Positions 16,205 to 64,000 of a stretch of DNA of 64,000 nt are shown piece by piece (within the stretch, counting starts at the first letter, position 1; every line of letters begins with the position of its first letter). The stretch covers positions 14,508,001 through 14,572,000 of the forward strand of contig OU015568.1 of assembly GCA_907165135.1 (NCBI GenBank), read 5' to 3'. Under the pieces are notes generated by a model. It saw nothing but the letters and a program-made list of their open reading frames with translations. It did not search any database and had not been told where the DNA came from. The DNA comes from Oikopleura dioica (Eukaryota; Animalia; Chordata). Made by a program: the position numbers and the translations under genes.

Positions 16205-16872
16205 TCCACAGTCAGTCCCGGCTTCATCAACTTCAATCCCAGCTTCAACAACTTCGATCCTAGCTTTTCAGACGTCAATCCTGGTGACTCGAACGTCCAT
16301 TGTGGCATCTCCAGCGTCGATTTCGGCTTCTTAATGCCGATCCTAGCGTCACAAACTAAAATCCTAATTCTAGGATTCTTCGATTCTTGATTTTTTAATT
16401 TAAGGGGCTTGACGGCCCTTCGGGCCGTCTCAGCCCCGATTCTTGATTTTTTAATTTAAGGGGCTTGACGGCCCTTCGGGCCGTCTCAGCCCCGATTCTT
16501 GATTTTTAATTTAAGTGGCTTGACGGCCCTTCGGGCCGTCTCAGCCCCGATTCTTGATTTTTAATTTAAGGGGCTTGACGGCCCTTCGGGCCGTCTCAGC
16601 CCCGATTCTTGATTTTTTAATTTAAGGGGCTTGACGGCCTTTCTCGGCCTTTTCCAACGTCAATTTTATTGATTATTATTCAAGAAGCAATAAAAGAAAA
16701 TTTTAAAGCCGGGACTGGCATCTGAGAAGCTCGGATTGAAGAAAGTGACGCCCGGATCGGATCTTAAGAAGCCGGGATTGACGCTGGAGCGACCAGGATT
16801 GACGTCTGTAAAGCTAGGATCGAAGTTGTTGAAGCAAAGATTAAAGTTGGTGAAGCCGGGATTGAGTGTGGA
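16205..16872. mobile_element. Foldback-like element: degenerate inverted arms built of ~21-bp subrepeats around a central tandem array
   Basis: 16205-16351 aligns with the reverse complement of 16745-16872 (e.g. GCTTCAACAACTTCGATCCTAGCTT on both arms). Confidence 0.7.
16382..16639. repeat. Tandem repeat of 55-56-bp units, ~4.6 copies, each with a GC-rich hairpin
   Basis: Units start at 16382, 16438, 16494, 16549 and 16604; hairpin GGGGCT-T-GACGGCCC-TTC-GGGCCGTC-TC-AGCCCC. Confidence 0.95.
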
Positions 16873-31165: not shown

Positions 31166-31503
31166 ATAAATAATTTGTATATTCATATCTTTGTTTCAAA
31201 TTCGCAGCGAGCATTCTTTTAGTAAAAAGAAGTGAAGCAGGATGTTTCTGGAGAGTTACTTCAAGTACATAATACATAAAAATTGTTTCTTCTGATTAGC
31301 TGTCTACTTTTGAGTCTCGTAAAAGTCTAATATGGCATATAATTACACTTATATGATAATTGAAAGAACGAAAAAACTGTCATTGCATCTACATAAAGCT
31401 ACAGAAATATATCGAAGTCGTCAATAGACAGGCTTTTTGGAAAGGAATCTTTTGAAGAGTATAATTATATTCAGTGCTGTTAAGAGTCTAAATTTTAGAG
31501 GGT

Positions 31504-31781
31504 TGTTAGTGAAGGAAGTAAGTGAGAGCGCCCTTATTAGGCGCTATCACTACTGACCATAAATAGCTAGGTTAGCGAGAGATCTGGACTGACTAACTTA
31601 TTATGATTTGAAATAAAATATATAAAGAAAGCTCTTTGTGAGCCCCTTTGTATACGTCTCGCGACCGCATCGACAGACAGTCATTCCATCAGCTATATTG
31701 GATCAGCAAGCAGGCTATCAGCTAGAGTAGAGATCAGACGACCTGGGACTACCTGCAGAGCAGCCACTTATCCAAATAACA
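31504..31781 (+). repeat. 5' LTR (278 bp)
   Basis: TGTTAGTGAAGG..AAATAACA, direct repeat of 35135-35411. Confidence 0.96.
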
Positions 31782-33123
31782 TTTGGTGACTTACGTTGGT
31801 AAAGAACAACGCGTACCTCGGAGGAACAGAGACACCTCGGCGGACAGATAGAGATTGACAACCTGTATCTTTGAGCCGCGCCGCTTAAATTACGATTGGA
31901 ACTTGGACCAGTTCGACGGCTATTAGAGCCGTGCCGTATCAAAAATTTGGAGGAAGATAGTCCTATCAAAACTTCCTCGCGGTAAGAAGAGCCGCGCCGA
32001 AAACTGGGAGCGTCATCTCCGGCGGTTAAGAGAGCCGCACCGCATTTATCCAAGAATTTAATGAAACATCGCCCTTATTTTCTTCTCAACTAAAAAGAAA
32101 GTTTTTCACAAAGCAACGACAGGGACAAATGGACATTATTCGCCAGAGGATGGTTAATCCCGAAAAATACAGTAGGGTTCGCCCAAGAAGGTTCTTGTAG
32201 CCCCTGGCTCAGCGAAAATGAAACTAACTTTATCGTGAGAAGACAAAAGGACGATATCCCTGCTCAAGAATGCAGCGAAGAGTAAAAACTAATATAAGAA
32301 GATAAGATTTAAAGGCCCTGGAAAGTCCAGTGTAACGTAGAATTACAAATCATGAGGAAAAGAGGAAAAATAATTGGAGATAAAGATGACCGAACTCAGC
32401 AAAAAGATCAAAGAGAGGCTACAAAATGATAATTACACTGAGAAGACCATAACACCGGTGAAAACATCAAAAGCTATCGGAACCACAAAAGGTCAAGCCC
32501 ACTCTGAGAAAGTCAGAATTGCCGGTATGATCAAAGGCTCCTGAAAGACCACAAAGGTCAAAGGTTGACTCTGAGAAACCGCAGATCTGGCGACCCGCCC
32601 AAATGCCATCAAGACCTGTCACGGAAGCTAGGTGAGCTAACGATACCTTGAGCGCGCAGCCGGTCAATCAGAGTGGAGGTGGACTTGTGAATTCGTGAAA
32701 CGCCAAGTGACGCCAATACACTTCGTTGCGTTTTAACAAAATGATGTGTCCAGAGTATTGCGACAAGCTGCTTCTACGTCAATTTCAAACCAGCGTGCGT
32801 TCTAACTATCCTGTTTCCATTGAAAAATGGTGTGATCCGCTGGCGCTGCCGGTTTACGATCCTACTCACAAGGACCGAACGCCAGGGTGAGCGGTCGTTA
32901 AATTGCAACAGCTTCATGACAGCCGAGTGAGCGCTAACCAAGTACATAAACTTATGTATTGGTACATGCACATGCGCGCCCGTCAACGTCAATTTTCCCC
33001 GGAATGTATTGATGCTATTGAAATCTCATTTTGAGCGGTCAGTATAAAACTGGAAAACGCCCCTCATAAGAAGACTCCACCCCTCTGCTTGGTCAGCAAC
33101 TTCATTCTTCGAGTTTATCCAAA

Positions 33124-33471
33124 ATGAGTGGCCACGGAAAGAGAAAAACGCGATCACAAAAAGAAGGAGATTCGCCTCAGAAGAAACAAGCGCTCGACAA
33201 GTCGCAAGACAAGGAAAAAGCAGAAATGGAAAAATCCCTTCATCGAGCGTGTCAACGACTTAGTCAGGAACATGGGGTAAAAATCCAATTTCTTGGATTC
33301 GACTACAAGAAACAAAGAACAATGACACAACAGTACGGGCCCAAAACGCGCCAACAACATGAGAAGGAAGAATCAAAAAGGAAGTTCATCATGGAAATGA
33401 ACAAACGCTTATGGATGTTGAGTGAGAAAGCTGAATCTACAAGCTCTGACAAGCCCAATTCTCAGAACTAA
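33124..33471 (+). CDS. 115-aa basic/charged cargo ORF in the LTR element, unknown function
   Basis: ATG-initiated ORF MSGHGKRKTRSQ.. with TATAAAA at 33043-33049; no recognisable gag motif. Confidence 0.6.
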   Translation: MSGHGKRKTRSQKEGDSPQKKQALDKSQDKEKAEMEKSLHRACQRLSQEHGVKIQFLGFDYKKQRTMTQQYGPKTRQQHEKEESKRKFIMEMNKRLWMLSEKAESTSSDKPNSQN

Positions 33472-33813
33472 CGAATCATCAAAACACCTCAAAACAATCA
33501 AACTCTAATCAGAAAATTCAATCCTTAACTTCCTTTGCAAGTCCTATTTGGCGATGACTTGGAGACCTGAGAAATCTTTAGCGGCGCGATGTCAAACTTG
33601 GCACTCTACGAAAGATACCCTTAAGTGGTGGTGGCTTCGATACCTCGTAAAAAAAAGCTGGACAAAGCGATGTTGCGACATACCCTTACGTCGTTAACAC
33701 TTATCTTGTTTTTAACGAGGGGATACCCTTAAAAATGCCGCGTTGGACCGTCGTAAAAATGCCCACCGTACTGGGAAGTCTGAAAACAACAAGACGCCAA
33801 AGTGTCAACTGAT

Positions 33814-34902
33814 TTATTCTTTTGGAAATAGGATACATGCGTAACACGCAGGGCAAGACAAAAGACGGATGATGGTCTCGTTTTCTTGATTTGGGCCATA
33901 ATGTGACGACTTTTGGAGTTGTAGGACCAGGTCACGACAAACACAAGGAACCGTTTTCTTCAGAAGTTCTGGCTCAACCGAAATCTCCAATGGTCTCTCG
34001 TCTTCAGGAGCAATTCCTCCTAAGAACAGATGAGTGAATATGACAAAATAACAATCAAACCTTCACCATGTCGAGTCCGCCAGATCGAATTCGCAGCAGA
34101 CAAGGATAGATAGTGGTTTCCAGAGCCACAAACATATCCGAGCTGGCCAACCTGATCCCAACAAGGAGCGTGCTCAAAAACTGCGGCGTAAGTTACGCAA
34201 CAAATTTGTTGCGCTTGCTCGGGATGTTCTCGGCAAAGGTTCTGTTGCCAGGAAGGTGGGGCTCGTGAGGGCAATATTCGTCCAGGCGTCAGAGTTGCCG
34301 AAGATCCAACCTGTAAGTGAAACAGTGCGTGAAGAGCACGTACTGGCTCCTGGAATCCGGCACGATCTTTGTAGTTTTCCCAGACGCTTAAGAAAAATGT
34401 GCGAAATGCCGGACAGGAAAGCGAATCTTTTAGTCCAACGGAACGGGCAGAGTGGAGCAGCGAAAAATTTTGGTCATTCTCGCCACTATAATGCGACAGT
34501 AACTCTGCCTGGGAATGCAGACCAAGAGCCGAGTTGTGAAGCAACCGCTTGAATCTTAAAACGACGCGGCCGACCTCCGTCACGTGCTCCTCCCTTGGTT
34601 GACCTCCGTCAGCCGGATGCTGGCTCCGGGCATGGTTTTGCACCGTCTTGCGGACATCGCTAAGAAAAACGCACTGGGAGCAACGAAAAAGGGTTACTGG
34701 ACGATGCTGGTTCAAAAACATTCTCTGGTCAAAAAAATAATCGATGGAGTGGTACTCAATTTGAAGTGCTAGGCTACCGATCTCGTGTATTCGCCAATCT
34801 TTACGATATGGATTAACGACAATACATTGACGAGTGTATTGCTCAATCCACGACAGCCGGGGCTTGATCACGTTCAAAGATTACGACCTTTTCGAATGAC
34901 AT
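33814..34902 (-). CDS. Antisense 3-exon cargo gene (~333 aa) with a C2H2-like zinc finger and Cys-rich C-terminus
   Basis: Exons 34888-34902, 34061-34841 and 33814-34019 are joined in frame by GT-AG introns of 46 and 41 nt. Motifs FRCSQC..HARSQH, CVC and CPACYAC; AATAAA overlaps the stop codon. Confidence 0.7.
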
Positions 34903-35134
34903 ACTTAAAAAAGATCAATGATTTGTTTATGAACAACCTTCTCACTCTGTTAAAAAAAAAAAAAAAATTCATTCTCTTCTGTCTCTACTCTCAACCTTTT
35001 CCTTAAGCTCTCCTTGTCATCAGTTCTGAGTTCTTTTCTACATTAGCCATTCTCATTATCAATTTTTGGTTATTTTTCTACCGTATCTCTCATTAACTGA
35101 GTCTTATGAACCCCCCCCCCGAGGAGGGGAAGAA

Positions 35135-35411
35135 TGTTAGTGAAGGAAGTAAGTGAGAGCGCCCTTATTAGGCGCTATCACTACTGACCATAAATAGCTA
35201 GGTTAGCGAGAGATCTGGACTGACTAACTTATTATGATTTGAAATAAAATATATAAAGAAAGCTCTTTGTGAGCCCATTTGTATACGTCTCGCGACCGCA
35301 TCGACAGACAGTCATTCCATCAGCTATATTGGATCAGCAAGCAGGCTATCAGCTAGAGTAGAGATCAGACGACCTGGGACTCCTGCAGAGCAGCCACTTA
35401 TCAAAATAACA
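35135..35411 (+). repeat. 3' LTR (277 bp)
   Basis: Matches the 5' LTR apart from 2 substitutions and 1 indel. Confidence 0.96.
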
Positions 35412-35520
35412 GGGTTATTCCGGGAGCATAATTAACCTAGATCTTATGAGGGCGTCCAAATGCCTATTTATAACAAGGCTTAAATTTGGATGAACAAGCG
35501 CAATAAGTAAAAGAGAAACT

Positions 35521-39157: not shown

Positions 39158-42017
39158 TTACACTAAATCTTCAGCAAAAGTTGGACTCAGAGATGTGTCT
39201 CTCGGCGGAACAGCTGGAAGGGGTTTTCTAGGTGCAGGGATCGGAGGGGACATCTTTCTACCGCGATTTGATTTATAGTCGGCTTTGGCTCTGGAAAAAT
39301 GATCGGGTTTGAAGGAAATGCTTTCTTTCCTCGGAAGGTTCGATTTTCTTCCCTTTTTCGTTTCAGCCTGAAAATACAATGTATGAAACTCATACTATGA
39401 ATCAACCGAAAACAAATATTAAAGATTGTAGTTTATTTTATACCTCACGATTTCCTTTGACGAATTGGTCAATTCGACCAACTAAAATGGCAAAAGTCGG
39501 TCTTTTTTCAGGTTCATCGTGCCAGCACTCCATCATTAACTCGCAAAGTTCAAGAGAACAATCACTCGGCATTTCCAATCGATCCCCTTTTAGCAAATAA
39601 TCTTTCAGACCTTGAAAAGGTGTAAATGAAAAAAGTATGTTCAATATACGGACGATATATAATACATTGATATAGGGACTTTCTCATTTACCAGCCCAGT
39701 CGCCTAGAGGTCCGTACGGAACTGCTCCTCTCGTGAATATTTCCCAAGTAAGAATGCCAAATGCCCACACATCAGACTTTTCTGAGAACATACGCCGCTG
39801 AAGAACTTCTATGGCCAGCCATTTCAAAGGGAGCTTTGTTTGGCTTCGAGAACTGAAGAAGGTTCGTACTGTTTCTATTTGATTTTTCAACTTACACGTA
39901 TTCTTCCTGATACAGTTTTTCGAATGTTTTCGAAAGACCAAAATCTGCAATTCTCAAGTTGATCCTGTTATTGTCCATGCTTTCTAAGAGACAGTTTCTA
40001 GCGGCGAGATCTCGATGAATGACTCCTTGGTGGACGAGATAATTCATTCCTTCAGCAGCTTGTTGACAAAATTTGAGACACTTTCAAAGAAAAAAAAATC
40101 AATCGTTCTATTTTAAAGTACTTACGTCACTAATGAGAAGCACGTTTTCGTCATTTTTAACATAGTTTCTAAGATCCCCACAGTCCATCAAAGGGAGAAT
40201 CATTTCTGGCTCAGCGAAGTCGTTGAAAGAAACTCCGATGAGTTTCATGACATTGTTATGTTCGAAATTGTTCATTTGAATTGCCTCGTCAAAGATCGCT
40301 TTTGCATGTTCTGCGTCGAAATACTCGCAACTTTCTATTCCTGAATCGCCACTGGCATATTTATTGCTTCCCAGGGATGTCGACTTGTCTGAATATCCAG
40401 GACCCTTGACTCCATTGCTAACCGCACTTTTCATCGTCTTTATAGCAATTTTATGAATAGTAACTCCCGTGTCGTTTTTTAATCTACCCGCATGAGTGGT
40501 ACCGAAGGCTCCTTTTCCCAATTCATTGCCGTCGCGCTCGATTTTACTAATTTAATTGGTAGGTTTGTTGTTTTTAGCGGCTTTTAAGTTTTATTAGCTC
40601 ATGAGTGTACCTTGGATTGATGTAGATCTTCTTGAGAATCTCCTTCTTAGGATCTTGCATGCAACTCATTATATGTTCGAATGCTTCTTGTGGTCGGTCA
40701 TCAGACAAAAGCTTCATCCTTTCAGCCTTGTGGATCCCCTTTTCGATTTCTTTGTTCAAGAACCGCTTGATGAAAATTGCAACAAGAACTCCCCCAGAAA
40801 GGAAAATGAGGACAAGGATGACAATCAAAAGTATTGTACGCAGTGGCCAGCGGAACAAAATTTCAGATGAAGAAACAATATATGTTGTTTTGTGTTTGTG
40901 GCCTTTATGGCCCGTTGGAGGACCGAACAACATCGAGAAATACATGGAAGGAGCTCGTTTTCCGCTGTCAGGAATCGTTATTCGATAGAATAGCTTACCA
41001 CCGTCTTCGTTCGTTTTCAAGTGTTCTTTAGACAAAACTTTTCCATTATTGCAAATTTCCGACTTTTTGTATTTGTCATCACAGTAGAACTTCTTGTAAT
41101 TTTCTGAAAAATAGTATTCGTTTTTCTCATCATCGTTATGTTTGTCATGGTAATTATGCTCTCCATCATGTTCTCCATCATGTTCTTCATCATGTTCTTG
41201 ATCTTCGCTGTGTTCTTTATGGTCTTTTTCATCATGTCTTTTGTCGCTCAAATAAAATACAAAATGGTCCATCCAATGTTCCATCGTTTTATTCCAAGCA
41301 GCCAATTTATCTCCTTCGAGGTTTCGATTTAGCTGCTTCGTAATTATCAAATCACCGTTCTTATCGATTTTATAATAAGATCCTGCTCTTTGAAAAAAGC
41401 CATAGAACTTAAGGTCGTCCAAGTCTACGACCCGAACTTCTCCAATCTTGCAATCTTTTGAATCTTTTGTATTTGCGTAAATCCCCACTTCCTCTTGAAT
41501 TTGTCGAAATTTCTCGTCATCGGTTTCCTCGAAAAACGCAAAAACTCCGGTATTCGTTCCACTTTTTCGATGATAATTATAGTCAATCTGTATCCTAACG
41601 AATTCAGTCGTTTCATCATTTTTAAGTCTTTTATAGCCTTTTTCTGAGTCAAAAACTCTCTCAGTCCTAGAATAAGAGGATATCTGACAAGATAGACCAA
41701 AATAAATTCAGCTAAAATTCAATTTTGACTCGTTTCTATGAAAACTTCTTGAGGGTGAAAGTCTTCTGGAACTTCGCATGCAATGGTCATTTCATTTTCT
41801 CTCGTTATCGTTGTATTTCCCCTTTCCAGTTGTTTGCATATTGGATTTTGACATGCTTAGATTTTAATTTTATAAGTGAGTTTTATTATTTATCTTATAT
41901 GATTTTATATACCTTATAAATTATAACTTACAATTATAACTTATAACTTTATAATTTATAATCTATCTTACTTTGGCGCGCAACAACAAGCCCAATTATC
42001 ACCCATAGAATCCTCAT
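39158..42017 (-). CDS. Receptor tyrosine kinase copy A: MET/RON-like kinase, unrecognised ectodomain
   Basis: Signal peptide [92 protein letters not shown]. Confidence 0.88.
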
Positions 42018-45685: not shown

Positions 45686-48244
45686 TTACACCAATTCTTC
45701 AGCATGAGTTGGGCTTAGCGACGTTTCCCTCACTGGAACAGCGGGTAGCGGTTTTCTAGGCGCAGGAACTGGAGGCGACATCTTTTTACCACGGTTTGAT
45801 TTGTAGCCGGCTTTGGTTCTCGAAAAATGATCTCGCTTGAAGGAAATATTTCCTCTTCTTGGAAGGCTAGATTTTCTTCCCTTTTTCGTCTCAGACTGAA
45901 AGAGAGAATGAATCAAAAGTGAAAACTGGGTCAGTTTCATTACCTCACGGTGACCTTTGACGAATTGGTCGAATCGACTCACTAAATTAGCAAAAGTCGG
46001 TCTTTTTTCAGTCTCATCGTGCCAACACTCCATCATTAGCTCGTACAACTCAGGAGTGCAATCATTTGGCATTTCTAACCGCTCCCCATTGAGCAAATAA
46101 GCCTTCAGACCTGAAAAAGCCGTCATGGAAAATAGCAAAGGAGGGATTTTCGCTTACCGGCCCAGTCGCTGAGAGCTCCGTATGGCATTGCTCCTCTCGT
46201 GAAGATTTCCCAAGTGAGAATGCCAAATGCCCAGACGTCAGACTTTTCCGAGAACATACGCTGCTCGAGAACTTCAATGGCCAACCACTTCAAGGGGAGC
46301 TTTGTTTGGCTTTGAGCACTGAAGCAGCTCATTTAGATTGATAATTTTCTATTTACTACTTACACATATTCTTCCTGGTAAAGATTTTCGAAAGTCTTTG
46401 ACAAGCCAAAATCGGCTATTCTCAAGTTGATCCTGTTGTTGTCCATGCTTTCTAAGAGGCAGTTTCTAGCGGCGAGATCTCGATGAATAACGCCTTGACG
46501 GACGAGATAATTCATTCCTTCAGCCGCTTGTTGACAGAATTTCAGACACTAGAGAAGAAAAATTATTCACTTAATTTAGCGTTTAGCTCTTACATCACGA
46601 ATGAGAAGCTCGTTCTCGTCATTTTTGACATAGTTTCTTAGATCGCCACAATCCATGAGAGGCAGGATCATTTCCGGCTCAGCACAGCGGTTGAAAGAAA
46701 CACCAATAAGTTTCATGACATTGTTATGCTCGAAATTGCTCATTTGGATGGCTTCGTCAAAGATCGCTTTTGCATGTTCGCCGTCAAAATATTCGCCGGC
46801 GCTTCCTGTTCCTGGATAACCACTGCCGCTTCCCTGGTAGGTTGCATAACCAGGCCCATTAATTCCATTACTGATCGCTGTTTTCATCGTTTTAATGGCT
46901 ATTTTATGAATCGTAACTCCCGCGTCATTTTGTAATGTACCCGCGCGGGTTGTACCAAAAGCGCCTTTGCCCAACTCACGACCGTCGCGCTTTATTTTGC
47001 TTAATGAATTGCTTAGTGACTTTAATGAGCGAATGATTGTACCTTGGGTCGATGTAGATTTTCTTGAGAATTTTCTTCTGAGGATCCGGCATGCAACTCA
47101 TAATGTGCTCGAATGCTTCTTGTGGTCGATCATCAGACAAAAGCTTCATCCTTTCAGCCTTGTTGATCCCCTTTTCGATTTCTTTATTCATGTATCGTTT
47201 GATAAAAATGATCGCTAGAACTCCACCAGCGACAAAAATGAGGACCAAGGCGCCGATGAGAATTTTTGTATGCAGTGGCCAGTAGAATGAAATCGTGGAA
47301 GGTGTGTCCACAAACTTGCTATCATGGTTGTAAGGAGGACCAAACAACATCGAAAATTGCATCGAAGGGGCTCGTTTTCCACTGTCAGGGATTTTTATTT
47401 GGTAGAATAGTTCTTTCGCTTGTTCGTAGCTGGTAGTTTTCAAGTCAGTGTTTGCTAAGACTTTCCCATTTCTGCATATTTCGTTCTCCTTGTATTTTTC
47501 GTTAATGCAGTAGAAATTCTTATAGGTTTGCGAAAAGTAGTACTCGTTTTTCTTGTCTTTATTGTCATCCACGTTGCTCAAGTTGAAGACGAAATGATCC
47601 ATCCAATGCTTCATCGTTTTTTCCCAGGCATCAAAGTTATCTTGATCTAGGTCTCGATTTAACTGCTTTGTAATTATCAAATCGCCGTTCTTTTCGATGC
47701 TATATTTCGATCCTTCAGTTCGAAATTTGTAAAGCTCGAAGTTGTTCAAGTTCACAACGCGCACATCTCCAATCTTGCAATCTCGTGAATCTGCGAAGAT
47801 CTCAGCGTCGTCTTTTCTTTCTTTGAAGTTTTCATCCGTGAAAGCAAAAACGCCGGTGTTAGTTCCGGATATCCGATGATAGTCGATCTTCTTCTCCACC
47901 GCTTCGGCTTTTCCATCAGTTACAATAAAGTAGCCTTTTCTCGCGTCGAAAATAAGCCTGTCCCTGATTACTAATGTCTTTGACAGAGAAAAGAATCTTG
48001 AAAAAGTGCTAAACGTTTTTGACGCGTTCCTACAAAAACCTCTGTTGGATTAAAATCTCTTGGCACTTGACATGCAATAGACATTTCGTCCGCTCTCGTT
48101 ATCGTGGCAGCCCCTTTTTCTAGCTCCTTGCATATTGGCTTTCCACAAAAACTGTCTTCAATATAATTTTAAAAAATGTTCTTGAATAAAAATCCTACTT
48201 TGCTGAGCGGCGACCAGCCCAACTATCGCCGCTAGAATCTTCAT
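45686..48244 (-). CDS. Receptor tyrosine kinase copy B, paralogue of copy A
   Basis: Signal peptide [15 protein letters not shown]; same exon structure, TM segment and kinase motifs as 39158-42017. Confidence 0.88.
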
Positions 48245-49220
48245 CACGCCCTAAGAGGCGACGACCACCAGATTTCTTTCTCTCTTGAAAATTGATGAGT
48301 TCTGCTTCTGTGTGCCCGTCTCTCTTTCTCTCTAAAATCGAGTGCTCGCGGCGTGACTCACGACCATTTTCATTCAAAAGGAATCTTTTTACAATGCCGA
48401 TGACGACGAAAATAAAGCCCTGGCTGGAGGCGCTTTTTTACGCCGTTTTGCACCGCCAAAATCGCTTTCCGCTTTGTCGAGCTCTTCTTCAGTTAATTTT
48501 ACTTGCTTACTGTTTGCTTCTTATTCTGAATTTGCAATCAACTGGAGCTGAAAACACTCAATCACTCGGCGGCGAATTGGAAAAATTGATTCACCCAAGG
48601 GTTAGTTTGCTCTGAGGCTAAGCTTTTTAATAAACGAAATAAACGCGAAAGGTAATCAGATGAAGGGGATGTTTGGAAGGAAGATTGGTTTACTATCGAG
48701 CTGACGAATTAACTTCTTCAGAGATCTTTTATTTGTTGAGTTCAAAAAAGGAACGTGTGGATGGTCAACTTGAGCTTTCCGTCTGTCTCTTGAATATGTA
48801 ATGGCTTATTTTTTAGAAGAGTCAATAAATTGAAGCACAAGCGACGGTCAAGTCAAGAACTTGACGGTCAAGTGACCTACATACTGACTCAAGTCCTTGA
48901 CCATTACAGTAATGGCATTACTCGGAGGTCAAGTTTTTCCACATACTTCAAATATGTTAGTGAATTAATTTCATAAAAATAAAACGAAGCATGATGAGCT
49001 GCTTACTTTTTTGAGTCAGAAGAAAACGCTAAAATCGAACGTTTATTTTGGATCAAAACGAAGCTCCATTAATGATATCTTGTTCAACGAATGGTTTATT
49101 AGAGTAAGTACGAGACCCACGTTTCGAGATTTATTTTTACTCAAAATATGCTCACGTTTGAAAGTGCATTTAATGGAACGGTTCTGATCACTTTTCATTA
49201 CATTTTTTCAAAAAGCAAAA

Positions 49221-51059
49221 ATGAAGCTTTTTTCAAATTTGATCGGATTTTTGATCGCAGAGAATAAAGCAAGGCGGCCGAATGTGATCCTGATAAATTG
49301 CGACGACTTCGGAATCGGCGACTTCCAGATCTATAACAAGGCGGCGAAAGTACCAACGCCGAATATAGACAGACTGGGAAAAGAGGGAATCAAGTTTCTT
49401 GATGGACACAGTGCTTCAAGTCGATGTGCACCAAGTAGGTACGGGCTCATGACCGGAAGGTACAATATGGAGGACAGTGAATTCCGAAAAATTCTTCCAA
49501 ATGAGCCGCAGCTCGCGAAGATGTTCAAAAAGAAAGGATACAAAACAGGAATCTTCGGGAAGGAACAACCGCTAAGCTTCAATCTGAAAAATCGCAACGC
49601 TACTGCGGAAGACTACAGAGAAACCAGACGACTTGACAATGAGTTCAAGGAGAAAATGGCCGAACTTGGAAGAGGTTTCCCCAGGTTGCGTACAGCCAAC
49701 AGAGTTCCCGGGATTTACGAGATGGAAATCGGCCCCCAAGATCACCAGTACGATTACTCCTTCACGCATAGCTTCATGTGTTGCCAGCCTGGCGGCTTCT
49801 ACGAGAATGGAAAGGGAATCGAACCAGTCGACACCTGGGTCAAGCAGCACCCCTACCCAGAACATACTCCAAAAGACGTCAGTCCTTTCAATCCTGAATG
49901 GGGTGGCTGCAGCACTTTCCCCGTCACAGGTTACATGGGCGGTCCCGGGCAGTCCGAGAAATTCGATGAGGAAACGGATGATCTCCCAATTTACTTCTGC
50001 AATTTTCCCCGACAGCAGCTGGTTATGAAATCCTTCGATACGAGAAATGCCGAAGAAATGACCATCCCAAGGCTGGAAAAATTCATCGATGATAACCACG
50101 AGGACGAGTTCTTTGTCTACTACGGCATGCGATCTGGACACGGACCATTCAACACCCCTTTGCGCTTCCGAAACTTGACGGAGGTCGGAAATTTGGGAGA
50201 AATGATCATGGAGACGGACGAAATCATCGGAAAAATTCTCAACAGACTCGATGCACATGGAATCGGTGATGATACTCTAGTCATGTTCATGAGCGACAAC
50301 GGACCAGCAGTTTCCGCGCAAGAAATTCAAGCCACCTTTGGTCACAATCAGCGACGAATTGACCTGCCCAACTATTGGGACGGTGGTATCCGAACAGTTG
50401 AGCTCTCTGGAACCAAAAATAGCCAAGGAGAAGCTGGCCACCGCACGCCGTTCTTGTGGCGATACCCGAGACGTTTTTCACCAAAGACTCTCGATGACCC
50501 AAAAGTTCCAGTGTCGACAGTTGACATTTACGCTACCCTTGCAGAACTGATCGATTACGATTTAGGAAAGTGTTTTACTTAGACAAAAGTTGCCAAAACC
50601 TATCGATAATCGAGAAAATCTTTGATCTGAATATTTAAAACACCAATCAAGATTGCAACGAGGCCCCTGATAGTAGAAGTCTAGTCAACTACATGGAAAC
50701 TGGCGAAGCCAATTTAGAACTCATCAAAAAGCCAGTCTTGACTCATGCAAACATTCGAGGACTAAACGCGTCTCTGAGAAAAGAGAATTTCAAATACATT
50801 CCCGGATCGCGAGAACTCTACAACATCAAATACGACCCTGAAGAGAAAAATGTAAGTTCAATAATGTAAGCAAATCTATAAAAAATTATTTTAGAATCTT
50901 ATTGACAACGAAGGCACGCAAGATTTTGTTGCCTACCTGGACGACTACTTGAGCGATTATCTTGACCACTTGGAAAAGCGAGAAATCGCAACAAGAAAGG
51001 GCGCTGAGAAGGAGTCCTGTTATCCCCAATTTGTTCGTTTCAACCAGTGGGCTATTTAA
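49221..51059 (+). CDS. Formylglycine-dependent (S1) sulfatase, copy 1, 3 exons
   Basis: RPNVILINCDDFG, TPNIDRL, CAPSRYGLMTGRY (CxPxR), TLVMFMSDNG, EAGHRTPFLWRYP, APDSRSL, ELYNIKYDPEE. Confidence 0.92.
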
Positions 51060-51377
51060 TTTAACTGTCTGTAAAATAATAAACAAGAAATATCTAACTG
51101 GACTGTTTTATTTTTGAAAAGAGTAGGAGCAACTTAGTCTTGAAGTCAATTTTGTCGCTCTGTCAGAAGCACCTTTTACCCGAGGCACATTCACCAATTC
51201 ATAAAAATGATGTTTATCAGGTCGTTAATTTTTCATGAGTTGCCTCATATGATATGACTCATAAATACGGTACTCGCAGTTTATACTTTGTTTTTATCCT
51301 AAACATGTTCACGTTTCAAAATGCATTTAGTAAACCGCCCCCGATCACTTTTCATTTCATCTTTTCAGAAAGGAAAA

Positions 51378-53066
51378 ATGAAATTTTTTTCGAATTTGAT
51401 AGGCTTTCTGATTGTAGAGAATAGAGCAAGGCGGCCGAATGTGATCCTCATAAATTGCGACGACTTCGGAATCGGCGACTTTCAGATCTACAACAAGGCA
51501 GCGAAAGTACCAACGCCGAATATAGACAGGCTCGGAAAGGAGGGAATCAAGTTTCTTGATGGACACAGTGCTTCAAGTCGATGTGCACCAAGTAGGAACG
51601 GATCATGACCGGACGGTACAATATGGAGGACAATGAATATCGACAAATTCTGCCTGGTGAGCCACATCTCGCGGAGATGTTCAAAAAATCAGGCGGTTGT
51701 TCAAAATCAATGACTCATAAGTAACCCTTTCTTTGCTACAGAAATCCTTTCTTAGATTTACTGCTTTCTCTTCATCTTTTTATCTTGGATGAGCACAATT
51801 AATTTTAACCACCAATGAGGATACAAAACCGGCCTCTTTGGAAAAGAGCAGCCACTGAACTACTGGCTTGTCAATCGCATCGCAACTGCCGAGGATAGAA
51901 AAGAAACCGAACGCCTAGATAACGAGTTCAAAGAGAAGATGAACGAGCTAGGCAAGCGCTACCCGAAATTGCGCACAGCCAACGATTTTCCCGGAATTTA
52001 CGAAATGAAAATCGGTCCTCAAGATCACCATTATGATTACTCTTTTACTAATAGCTTCATTTGCTGTCAGCCAGGAGGTTTCTATGAGAATGGAAAGGGA
52101 ATCGAACCAGTTGACACCTGGGTCAAGCAGCGCCCATTCCCAGAACACACTCCAAGAGAGGCAAGCTCTTTCAATCCGGAATGGGGTGGCTGCACCTTCA
52201 ATGGCGTCTCAGGTTACATGGGCGGTCCTGGACAACCCGAGAAATTCGATGAAGAAACGGAAGATCTCCCAATTTACTTCTGCAACTTTCCTAGACAACA
52301 ACTGGTGATGAAATCCTTCGACACTCGAAATGCGGAAGAGATGACCATCCCTAGACTGGAGAAATTCATTGACGATAATCACGAGGACGCGTTTTTTGTC
52401 TACTATGGCATGCGATCTGGACACGGGCCTTTCAACACTCCTCTACGTTTCAGAAACAAGACGGAAGTTGGAAGCTTGGGCGAAATGATCATGGAGACGG
52501 ATGAAATCATTGGAAAAATTCTCAACAGATTGGAAGAGCATGGAATCGCCGATGATACTCTAGTGATGTTCATGAGCGACAACGGTCCAGCGTCTTTTAC
52601 ACAAGATTTCGTTTCCAAATATGATCACAATCAGCGACAAGTTGATCTGCCTAATTATTGGGAAGGCGGCACTAGAACAGTTCAACTAAAAGGAAAGAAA
52701 AACACTCAAGCTGAAGCGGGTCACCGGACACCATTCTTGTGGCGCTATCCAAGACGTTTTGCGCCAAAGACTCTTGATGACCCAAAAGTGCCAGTGTCGA
52801 CAGTGGACATTTACGCTACTCTCGCAGAACTCATCGATTACGATTTAGGAAAGTGTTTGATTTTGAGAAATACAGAAGCTCTTGAAGTATAGTTTATCAA
52901 TACGCAATACGACAACGAAGGTACGCAAGATTTCGTAGCCTATTTGGACGACTACCTGAGCGATTATCTTGAGCACTTGGAAAAACGAGAAACCGCAACA
53001 AGAAAGGGAGCTGAAAAGGAATCCTGCTATCCTCAATTCGTTCGCTTCAACCAATTCGATTTTTAA
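51378..53066 (+). pseudogene. Sulfatase copy 2: tandem duplicate with a frameshift near 51600 and loss of the penultimate exon
   Basis: Closely parallels copy 1, but reads AACGGATCATG versus TACGGGCTCATG and has no counterpart of 50652-50851. Confidence 0.65.
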
Positions 53067-61006: not shown

Positions 61007-64000
61007 ATGATATTTTTCTATTTCTTGTTAGTTTTTAACAGAGTTGAAGGAAGCTGCAATTTGTTCAACGTGGAGTGCCAAGAAACAGGAGCATTTCTTA
61101 CTTTGGTAAAAACGGAATAAGAGATAAGTCTGTGAATATTTTTAAAGGATCTCGCTTGTCATAATTCAAGCGCTAGTGGGATCAACGGTGATCTGCAGGA
61201 TCTGTTTTTGGTTGCTGATGAGAGCAACGGAACGGTTTCAAATGACTGTGCTCTCTCCACCCTTCAGCTTCTGGAATACTCAAAATGCTTTGGAAACTTT
61301 AATGATGATTTTTCAGGTTGAAAAATTCCCATATTTCGACGTTATCTTGATATCTGTCTAGCAAATTACACCGCGTACGTGGTTGAATCTATTTCCGTCG
61401 AACAAACTGATTTGATATCCAAGCGAATCGAAGACATCTTCTGTGAACCAAGACTGTCCATCAGAATGGAAAGGGTTGCGCGATCATTGGAAATCCCGAG
61501 CTTTTACGGGAAAACGTCTTTTTCTGCTCCAGATGTACCGATTCAGCTTGAAGGTAGTTTTTTTCAGTAAGCTTTCATTTTACTAAGGTAACATAAAGGG
61601 GGAGAAAAACTCGGCTCATACATCGAAGCGTCAATCAAAAACGAAACTGATGATGGTCTTTTCAGGAGGGATCGGAATTTTTGACTAAAAGTTTTTAAAG
61701 AACAGTTTTTCATCCATGATTTTCAGTAGAGAACTAGTCGACTGCAACGTCACTTCTGAGGCGACAACAGGAAGGGTTTGGAGGAGTGCTCTTTTAAGTG
61801 TGATACGCTCATCATAAATCCTTGAAAAAGTGGAAGTTCTCCAAAATGGCACGATAACAGATGATGGTCTGAAACTTGGAGGCATTTCCTTGTCCCCCGT
61901 CTCGTTTAAATTCAGGCGATTTTCAACGAAAATAAATCTTGCAACTGCTCTACATGTCGAGGAAACGTTGAAAAAATAGCATTACAAACAATGTCAAATA
62001 ATCAGCGAAAGTTAAACTCTGCAATAATTGTAATTGAAAAATATTTTTTTTAAACTCAAAAGTGCACAATTTTATGGAGAAGCATTCAAGATACATTAAC
62101 AACTACAACTACAACAACGACTTCGACAACGACAACAACTACAACAACGACTACAACAACGACTACAACAACGACTACGACAACGACTACAACTACAACT
62201 ACAACTACAACTACAACTACAACAACGACTACGACTACGACTACGACAACGACAACTACTACAACTAAAGCATGCGCAAGTGATCCATGCTCTGGAATCA
62301 ATAACTGTCAGACCATCGTTAATGGCTGCGAAATAAGTCCTGTTAGAAATAATCTAATTGCGACTGTGGGCGCCGCTTATAACTACAAATTCTCAGCTGA
62401 AGTATATTGTGATCACAGTATGCCACTTGATAGCTGGAAGCAAATAATTCACGTCACTGGTGGCAGCGACGAAGGCTCTGCTGGGGATCGAACATTTGCT
62501 CTGTGGCGAGAATGGAATCAGAATGGGATTCATATCGCTGTCAATGACCCAAACGGTCATTTGTATGCAAAATCCAATTTTGCTTCATGTAATGATGGCT
62601 CTTGGAATACCTACTCCGTTGAAGTCAGACAAGTTGAGGGCTCACCCTCGACACTGAAATATGTAGTCAGCGTTGACGGTACTCAAATCGATCAAGGCAC
62701 TTATGATTCAAGCGGAGCATTAACTACAGGCAATCTGCAAGTTTTTATCTCTGATGATTGGTACGACCCTGCAACCGCTTTCTTGACCCGTAATTTCTTG
62801 TATCAAACTTTTGATGATTTACCAATGTGCGCTACTGATCCATGCGAAGGTCTTGCGACCTGTCAAACAATTATTAACGGCTGCGACATAGCGCCCATCA
62901 AGAACACTCAGCTCGCCACTGTCAGTGCTGCGCTCAACTATAAGGTATCAGCAGATGTTCTCTGCAATAACACCGCTGGTGATACTGAATGGAGGAACAT
63001 TATTCTTTTGACAAGTGACGCAGTCTCTGAACATCACAATGCTGGCAACCGACAATTTGCATTATTCGATACACCGACGGATGGTCAAATACAGATCAAT
63101 GCTAATGATGCAAGTGGATATTTAAACCGGGCGAATCTTTATCCAAGCTGCACCAATGGTCAATGGAACACATATTCAGTCGAAGTAAGACAACTTGAAA
63201 ATTGTTCATCGACACTGCGATACGTAGTAAGCATTGATGGTACTCAGATCGCCGAAGGCACTTACGAAGCGAGCGCAGCTTACAGCACAGGAAATCTTCA
63301 TGCCATGGTATCTGATGGTTTCCACGAGTCTGCATCTCAAACTAGCGTTAGAAATTTCTTCTATCAAACCTTCGAAGACATAACCGCGACTGATCCATGT
63401 GATGGTCAAACAAACTGTGTCACTATCGTCAATAGTTGCGCAGTAGCACCCGTTCTTAATACTCAAGTGGCGACTGTAACTGCGGCTTTGAATTACAAGA
63501 CCTCGGCTGAAATTTACTGTGATCACAGCATGGCACTGGACGGATTTTATAAAAATATTCTGCACATCACTGGTGGTAATAGTAATGGTAATCCAGGCAT
63601 GGGGAACAAATATCCACAGCCAAAGGATGGTAGAAAAAGATTTAGTTTGTACCCCTTTACGAGGCGATAGAACATTTGCCCTTACGCGTAATCCGAACGA
63701 TCATGGTTTACATTTTGCTGTCAATGATGGAAATGGTGATTCTAATGAGAAAGTCAACTACGTATATTGCACCCATGGAACTTGGAGCAACTATTCTGTT
63801 GAAGTCGGAGAAGTTTCAGGCTCTCCATCAACGCTCAAATATGTTGTCAGCGTTGACGGAGCCCAAATCGACGAGGGCACGTACGACCAAAGCGGAGCGT
63901 TGAGTACCGGCAATCTTCAAGTATTTATGTCTAGTAGTTGGAGTCCATCTGCTACGGCCTTCTTAGTTCGTAATTTCTTTTACCAAACGTTTCCCCCCAT
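61007..64000 (+). CDS. Secreted modular protein: N-terminal Cys domain (ZP-like, tentative), Thr stalk, and tandem ~185-aa lectin/LamG-like repeats; runs off the window
   Basis: Signal peptide MIFFYFLLVFNRVEG, poly-Thr tract, and three repeats with DPC..NC.TIVN.C, GDRTFAL, W.TYSVEVR, YVVSVDG, TGNL.V, RNF.YQTF. Joining the 5' exons to the repeats is inferred. Confidence 0.65.
62098..62267 (+). repeat. ACA/ACT/ACG trinucleotide-type repeat encoding poly-Thr
   Basis: In frame with ORF 62366..63670. Confidence 0.9.

Follow-up and report, generated by a model that had tools for sequence, protein, structure and literature searches.

An antisense, intron-bearing zinc-finger gene in a young LTR element of Oikopleura dioica that lacks detectable gag and pol: a probable satellite retroelement

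The DNA analysed here (hereafter the window) is a stretch of 64,000 nucleotides from the chordate Oikopleura dioica (assembly GCA_907165135.1, contig OU015568.1, positions 14,508,001 to 14,572,000 of the forward strand), and between positions 31,504 and 35,411 it holds a long terminal repeat (LTR) element that is structurally complete and recently inserted, in which no gag or pol was detected, and whose minus strand carries a spliced zinc-finger gene with relatives in other LTR elements. These features are best explained, with a probability of roughly 0.65, by the recent insertion of a non-autonomous LTR element belonging to a family that keeps its cis signals and one antisense gene, and which would be copied in trans while the gene serves the element.

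Structurally, the two LTRs differ by two substitutions and one single-base indel over 278 nt (98.9% identity), both begin with TG and end with CA, and the element is flanked by a 4-bp target-site duplication (TSD), GGGT. A primer-binding site (PBS)-like sequence, TGGTGACT, is located at 31784-31791, 2 nt past the 5' LTR, and a polypurine tract (PPT) abuts the 3' LTR, with an interior of 3353 nt. The sequence-only reading (an earlier examination of the letters alone, see below) had matched the PBS to tRNA-Trp as known in vertebrates, which would make this tRNA a putative primer. The structural hallmarks of an LTR retrotransposon (direct LTRs with TG..CA, TSD, PBS and PPT) are all found at their expected places, and PBS and PPT are kept in the relatives described below. 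An earlier examination of the letters alone (hereafter the sequence-only reading) had claimed intact cis signals, i.e., ~99% LTR identity, TG..CA termini, PBS, PPT and a 4-bp TSD, all of which were recovered, and its proposal that a complete LTR element inserted recently is borne out by the ~99% LTR identity and the intact GGGT duplication. Within the 5' LTR, which includes a TATA-like site and an AATAAA, we infer a U3/R/U5 division. The organization of the element is as follows (window coordinates, strand, feature):

31500-31503, no strand: left TSD copy, GGGT (from the sequence)
31504-31781, plus: 5' LTR, 278 nt, TG..CA (from the LTR comparison)
~31557-31566, plus: TATA-like site in the 5' LTR
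31612-31617, plus: AATAAA in the 5' LTR
31782-31791, plus: spacer (2 nt) and PBS core, together 10 nt, identical in the related contig L003
31792-32060, plus: leader with four copies of an 11-mer
32061-33123, plus: sense-strand region without coding signal
33124-33471, plus: sense open reading frame (ORF), 115 aa, unsupported as a gene
33472-33813, no strand: spacer from the sense ORF to the 3' end of the antisense gene
33814-34019, minus: last exon (exon 2) of the antisense gene
34020-34066, minus: intron of the antisense gene, 47 nt, GT..AG, phase 1
34067-34721, minus: first exon of the antisense gene, with an N-terminal C2H2-type finger
34722-34900, minus: region upstream of the antisense gene, holding a conserved 8-mer
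34952-34967, plus: A16 run
35111-35134, plus: C10 run (35111-35120) and 14-nt PPT (35121-35134), abutting the 3' LTR
35135-35411, plus: 3' LTR, 277 nt
35412-35415, no strand: right TSD copy, GGGT

To characterize the interior, all sense-frame stop-to-stop pieces of at least 35 aa and the larger antisense pieces were scanned against Pfam (E <= 1), and no match to gag, protease, reverse transcriptase (RT), RNase H, integrase or env models was obtained; a very divergent gag could escape such a scan. The sequence-only reading, which had described a 3.35-kb interior free of gag, RT, integrase and env and had named a single copy with a degenerate gag-pol in a profile (hidden Markov model) search as one outcome that would speak against it, is upheld as far as the absence of such motifs goes. 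Across 32061-33069, moreover, each sense frame contains 13-24 stops per 336 codons, roughly what would be expected at random, and no open stretch exceeds 63 codons. As the LTRs are only ~1% diverged, stops at this rate indicate that the region was non-coding already at the time of insertion, and the view that gag and pol were missing on arrival rests mainly on this point. We infer that it inserted in this form, even if a single clean deletion in place could have had the same result (see below). Without gag or pol, any movement of the element must rely on proteins supplied in trans.

The sense strand also includes the 115-aa ORF, with a TATA-like TATAAAA at ~33043-33049, ~75 nt upstream. The sequence-only reading had taken this pair for a gene with its own TATA box; ORF and motif are indeed present, but gene status is unsupported. 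An ORF of this length is attained in 5-14% of first-order Markov simulations of the same sequence (P 0.05-0.14), the strand composition around it is 41% A and 17% T, and no homologue was found by a word-index protein search, which is blind to much longer or shorter kin. PDB gave no match, and Pfam noise only. Further downstream, the spacer between this ORF and the 3' end of the antisense gene includes three copies of the 9-mer ATACCCTTA (33615-33730).

On the minus strand, by contrast with this sense ORF, the antisense gene (34721-33814; two exons, 47-nt intron, 286 aa) has an open frame of 286 codons that none of 2000 simulations of its half of the interior reached (P < 0.0005). Existence of an antisense spliced zinc-finger gene had been claimed from the letters alone and is confirmed, with its bounds corrected to 34721-34067 for exon 1, 34066-34020 for the intron and 34019-33814 for exon 2. 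A longer intron, considered on the basis of a weak tblastx match, was rejected because the exon-wise alignment fits the 47-nt intron shared with relatives. The plus strand of the first exon also includes a 166-codon open frame (34052-34549) lying wholly within it, which has no Pfam match and is probably a by-product of the composition of the coding strand.

With the product of this gene, a word-index protein search came back blank, and an exhaustive search of 1.84 billion representative proteins yielded P0001 as the one genuine relative (29% identity over 140 residues, E 3e-9; pairwise E 5e-17) along with two other matches that cover the generic finger only. A profile built from the window protein and P0001 recovered two more, P0004 and P0005. 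The genes of the relatives lie on three environmental contigs (L002, L003 and L004, sample accession ERR1719215, which none of the papers searched mentions), and protein identity to the window is ~29%. Exons were searched and aligned separately. All three relatives have their first Met aligned with the ATG at 34721, and in exon 1 the four proteins share 32 invariant columns, the four C2H2-type ligands among them. The genes of the relatives have three exons separated by introns of 39-47 nt, the second of which is matched in both position and phase by the 47-nt intron of the window. At the 3' end, the stop codon (TAA in the window) is located inside an AATAAA in all four genes, which also share a short C-terminal motif, and ~70 nt upstream of the ATG an 8-mer (34791-34798, CCAAT on the plus strand) is conserved in all four family members. 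As judged from these comparisons, the antisense gene is real.

Evolutionarily, the ratio (omega) of non-synonymous (dN) to synonymous (dS) change was estimated by the Nei-Gojobori method exon by exon, with only the counts being summed. The comparison of L002 and L004 gave a dN of 0.128 and a dS of 0.754 (omega 0.17 over 295 codons), while for the other pairs of relatives dS was saturated and dN was ~0.27. All exons of the three relatives have intact frames. Within its family the antisense gene is under purifying selection, as measured among the relatives, for which the dN/dS check put forward by the sequence-only reading turned out as non-neutral (~0.17).

The sequences around the related genes place them in LTR elements as well. 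L002 and L003 are fragments of related elements (each <=2.05 kb) without gag, pol or env match. Read in the sense orientation of the element, L003 starts with the antisense gene and continues with a C run and a PPT, an LTR of 207 nt with the ends TGT..ACA, 10 nt of spacer and PBS identical to those of the window, and a leader in which the 11-mer present four times in the window leader is found three times. This order (3' interior, LTR, 5' leader) is the one expected from a short-read collapse of two identical LTRs, or equally from a tandem array or a one-LTR circle. In L002, the gene is followed by the C run and PPT, a 224-nt LTR, and finally 13 nt that are unrelated. In L004, the region upstream of the zinc-finger gene (positions 1-348) is unrelated to L002 and L003 and holds, on the other strand, a 53-aa ORF resembling a coiled coil.

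When the window and L003 were compared at the nucleotide level, only the PBS and leader stood above the shuffled background (z 8.1), and the LTR bodies, the antisense gene and its upstream region were all at background. At the nucleotide level, the family has thus conserved its cis leader best, while the protein has drifted to ~29% identity. The presence of relatives this divergent in the same frame of LTR, PBS, leader and PPT indicates that the antisense gene is a long-standing component of this LTR-element family rather than recent cargo. The 39-47-nt introns of the relatives resemble the median intron of O. dioica (~49 nt; PMC8008620), which suggests appendicularian hosts for all three contigs.

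Within the conserved leader, the four 11-mer copies of the window are found at 31873-31883, 31926-31936, 31989-31999 and 32032-32042. In three of these four cases, as in two out of three in L003, the 11-mer serves as the 3' arm of a GC-rich hairpin of 6 bp, and the resulting five hairpin units include one compensatory and three wobble-compatible changes. This pattern is no more than suggestive of a leader hairpin structure, and the repeated GC-rich hairpins represent a candidate packaging or dimerisation signal.

As for the antisense protein, the N-terminal C2H2-type pattern (Cys-x2-Cys ... His-x4-His) has its four ligands invariant in all four proteins. In the relatives, exons 2 and 3 additionally encode a C3HC4-ordered series of eight Cys/His whose second loop is long. 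Of this RING-like pattern, the final Cys pair is found in the last exon of the window gene. The TRP28 domain (PF04195) was not matched by the antisense protein, sequence and profile searches of PDB with this protein returned nothing meaningful, and an AlphaFold2 model of the exon-1 part, computed from the four-sequence alignment, reached a mean confidence score (pLDDT) of 42. The protein might bind nucleic acids as a regulator in the service of the element, and it could act as a ubiquitin ligase in the relatives, but this assignment is doubtful and constitutes the weakest step of the explanation.

Overall, two sets of conserved features would thus characterize the family: on the one hand, cis signals suited to copying by the machinery of another element (TG..CA ends, PBS, hairpin leader, C run and PPT), and on the other hand one antisense gene of its own, whose intron is tiny and which brings a promoter-proximal motif and a poly(A) signal with it. 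In the proposed mechanism, which draws on what is established for retroelements in general, a sense RNA driven by the LTR would be reverse-transcribed and integrated by the proteins of an autonomous element, and the conserved PBS and leader would be the parts that this helper machinery must recognise. The intron, lying on the opposite strand, would not be spliced from the sense RNA and would be inherited, its antisense orientation preserving it. The helper would most likely be a Tor-type Ty3/gypsy element: in the Okinawa O. dioica assembly, OKI2018_I69, Tor dominates the LTR content (PMC8008620), and its duplications of 4-5 bp and similar LTR identity (PMC4402516) make it the obvious candidate. 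A broader and more speculative proposal, to which we would give rather little weight, is that of a satellite LTR lineage of planktonic tunicates which has shed gag and pol, in which an antisense, intron-bearing zinc-finger/RING-type regulator of the helper or of host silencing has long been kept under selection, and whose leader hairpins would act as a recognition handle for the helper or for the element's own protein.

Several observations weigh against a satellite element served by its antisense gene. A single copy of the element is visible in the 64-kb window, and L002, L003 and L004 are partial contigs, so that gag and pol may exist elsewhere in the family. The folding energies of the leader hairpins are no better than those of shuffled sequence. 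Pfam matches to C2H2 fail to reach the cut-offs (E 0.007-0.016 for the window protein, 2.6e-5 for P0001), the sole model matched by the RING-like region of the relatives is a sub-threshold Sina_RING (E 0.004), and the window copy, which retains five of the eight RING-like ligand columns, falls outside the definition of a RING. The protein collections searched include no gene model for the antisense gene. Finally, ~140 nt past the stop of the gene, L004 holds part of a convergent ORF (1618-1758; 47 aa, including a hydrophobic stretch), in which a sense gene missing from the window element might terminate; it shows no similarity to the sense ORF of the window and no Pfam match.

This fragment, as a hint of a sense gene in some relatives, bears on the alternative that survives best, namely that an autonomous and possibly env-bearing element with an antisense accessory gene lost its gag-pol(-env) in place, such that the present form never moved. 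The structure is compatible with this scenario, as an internal deletion would spare the LTRs and the TSD. However, in the 1.0-1.75 kb of sense sequence that is left, stops are about as frequent as at random and no domain was matched, and all coding parts would need to have been removed cleanly within the time represented by ~1% LTR divergence, hence we consider such a remnant unlikely. Alternatively, the antisense gene could work in the relatives and be fading here, the element itself being a dead, non-coding, LARD-like unit. The three RING-like ligand columns (out of eight) that are not Cys/His in the window copy, the low identity to the relatives and the lack of a gene model in protein collections would all fit such decay. 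Yet the 286-codon frame, the splice sites, the start, the stop within AATAAA and the upstream motif are all intact, which would be unexpected without selection given that divergence has already reached 29% identity, and we regard a decaying gene as improbable.

Least probable of all is a recent capture of host genes (the antisense gene, perhaps also the sense ORF) by an LTR vehicle. The antisense gene does look like a cellular one, with its introns, promoter-like motif and poly(A) signal, but its ~29%-identical relatives sit in the same frame of LTR, PBS, leader and PPT, the search of 1.84 billion representative proteins returned no free-standing cellular homologue (the other matches being to the generic finger only), and the sense ORF is unsupported. 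The idea of a vehicle for two non-retroviral cargo genes, with which the sequence-only reading had started, is accordingly not supported: one of the two genes is without support, and the other is no recent capture. We retain the reading of a non-autonomous element that inserted recently with its cis signals and a family-wide antisense gene.

A nearby sulfatase gene with a single exon assigns the window to OU015568.1 of GCA_907165135.1, the Okinawa assembly OKI2018_I69 (PMC8008620). With regard to its genomic context, the element is intergenic, located between two convergent host genes, i.e., a Tim17-family gene on its left (plus strand, end ~31165) and a sugar transporter on its right (minus strand, last exon ending ~36750). 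The surrounding ORFs correspond to ordinary compact host genes (sulfatases, an ALG9-like mannosyltransferase, a G-patch protein and the sugar transporter). Within the window, there are no further copies of the LTR beyond these two, no similarity to the element interior in the rest of the sequence, and no tRNA genes (tRNA scan), and Rfam has no match on the element. Elsewhere in the window, at 16392-16643, a unit of 55-56 nt is repeated in tandem four to five times, each copy including a GC-rich palindrome flanked by a T-rich run, and 62074-62295 is an AAC/GAC/TAC repeat of 9/12-nt periodicity that would encode an Asn/Asp/Tyr-rich stretch, directly upstream of a 434-aa ORF (62366-63670). Two sulfatase genes form a tandem pair (49105-50582 and 51262-52892, nucleotide identity 76-87%), and a second tandem duplication (39158-41488 and 45686-47899, ~6.4-6.5 kb apart, 78-86% identical) includes ~300-aa ORFs without Pfam match.

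Non-autonomous LTR elements are generally viewed as parasites that code for nothing and live off their helpers. If a family has discarded gag and pol and yet conserves an antisense gene (omega ~0.17 in relatives), it would demonstrate that a satellite may have its own function, and nature would also have provided an example in which antisense orientation saw an intron through retrotransposition. The host makes this all the more relevant, as the O. dioica genome is very small and under strong pressure against transposons. In OKI2018_I69, 44% of the repeats are unclassified (PMC8008620), and among such O. dioica repeats a family defined by sequence can now be placed. No Oikopleura element of this kind was found described in the literature searched.

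Among known systems, gene-transducing LTR elements such as maize Bs1 and the acutely transforming retroviruses are defective LTR units that carry coding sequence other than gag and pol, and their cargo, as a rule, lies in sense, has no introns, is recent and can be traced to a cellular gene. The gene of the window is in contrast antisense, intron-bearing, old and without a known parent, the exhaustive protein search having returned no cellular progenitor but only element-associated relatives and generic finger matches. In the same host, Tor elements are Ty3/gypsy elements with env, a TSD of 4-5 bp, a mean LTR identity of 98.5%, and internal promoters used besides the LTR promoter (PMC4402516). 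The window element resembles them in its TSD class, near-identical LTRs and internal promoters, a likeness to the published description. However, Tor elements are defined by gag, pol and often env, none of which is present here, and lacking pol the window element offers no RT or integrase by which to assign it to the Tor clade. The Tor paper (PMC4402516) makes no mention of an antisense gene.

LARD/TRIM-type elements and the non-autonomous members of Retand (PMC11963269) are, like the window element, complete in LTRs, PBS, PPT and TSD, devoid of gag and pol, and presumed to depend on helpers. LARDs and TRIMs are however non-coding by definition, whereas the window family keeps one selected, intron-bearing protein gene in antisense. 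The nearest published organization is that of the plant Ty3/gypsy elements Retand, Grande and RIRE2, which have an antisense extra ORF between pol and the 3' LTR and some members of which are non-autonomous (PMC11963269). Both there and in the window family, an antisense ORF adjoins the 3' LTR family-wide, and the product is proposed to bind nucleic acids. The plant elements differ in being mostly autonomous and in having a TRP28 domain, while the window family has C2H2-type and RING-like patterns outside any Pfam family and a spliceosomal intron, and the window element, in a tunicate host, has no gag or pol. Similarly, the antisense genes of deltaretroviruses (HBZ and APH-2) encode a regulatory protein on the minus strand near the 3' LTR (PMC11963269), which is a similar placement without any sequence relation, in genes of autonomous exogenous viruses. 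If the proposed reading is true, animals would have in this satellite lineage an equivalent of the antisense extra ORFs of plants and of the antisense genes of retroviruses, carried by a non-autonomous element.

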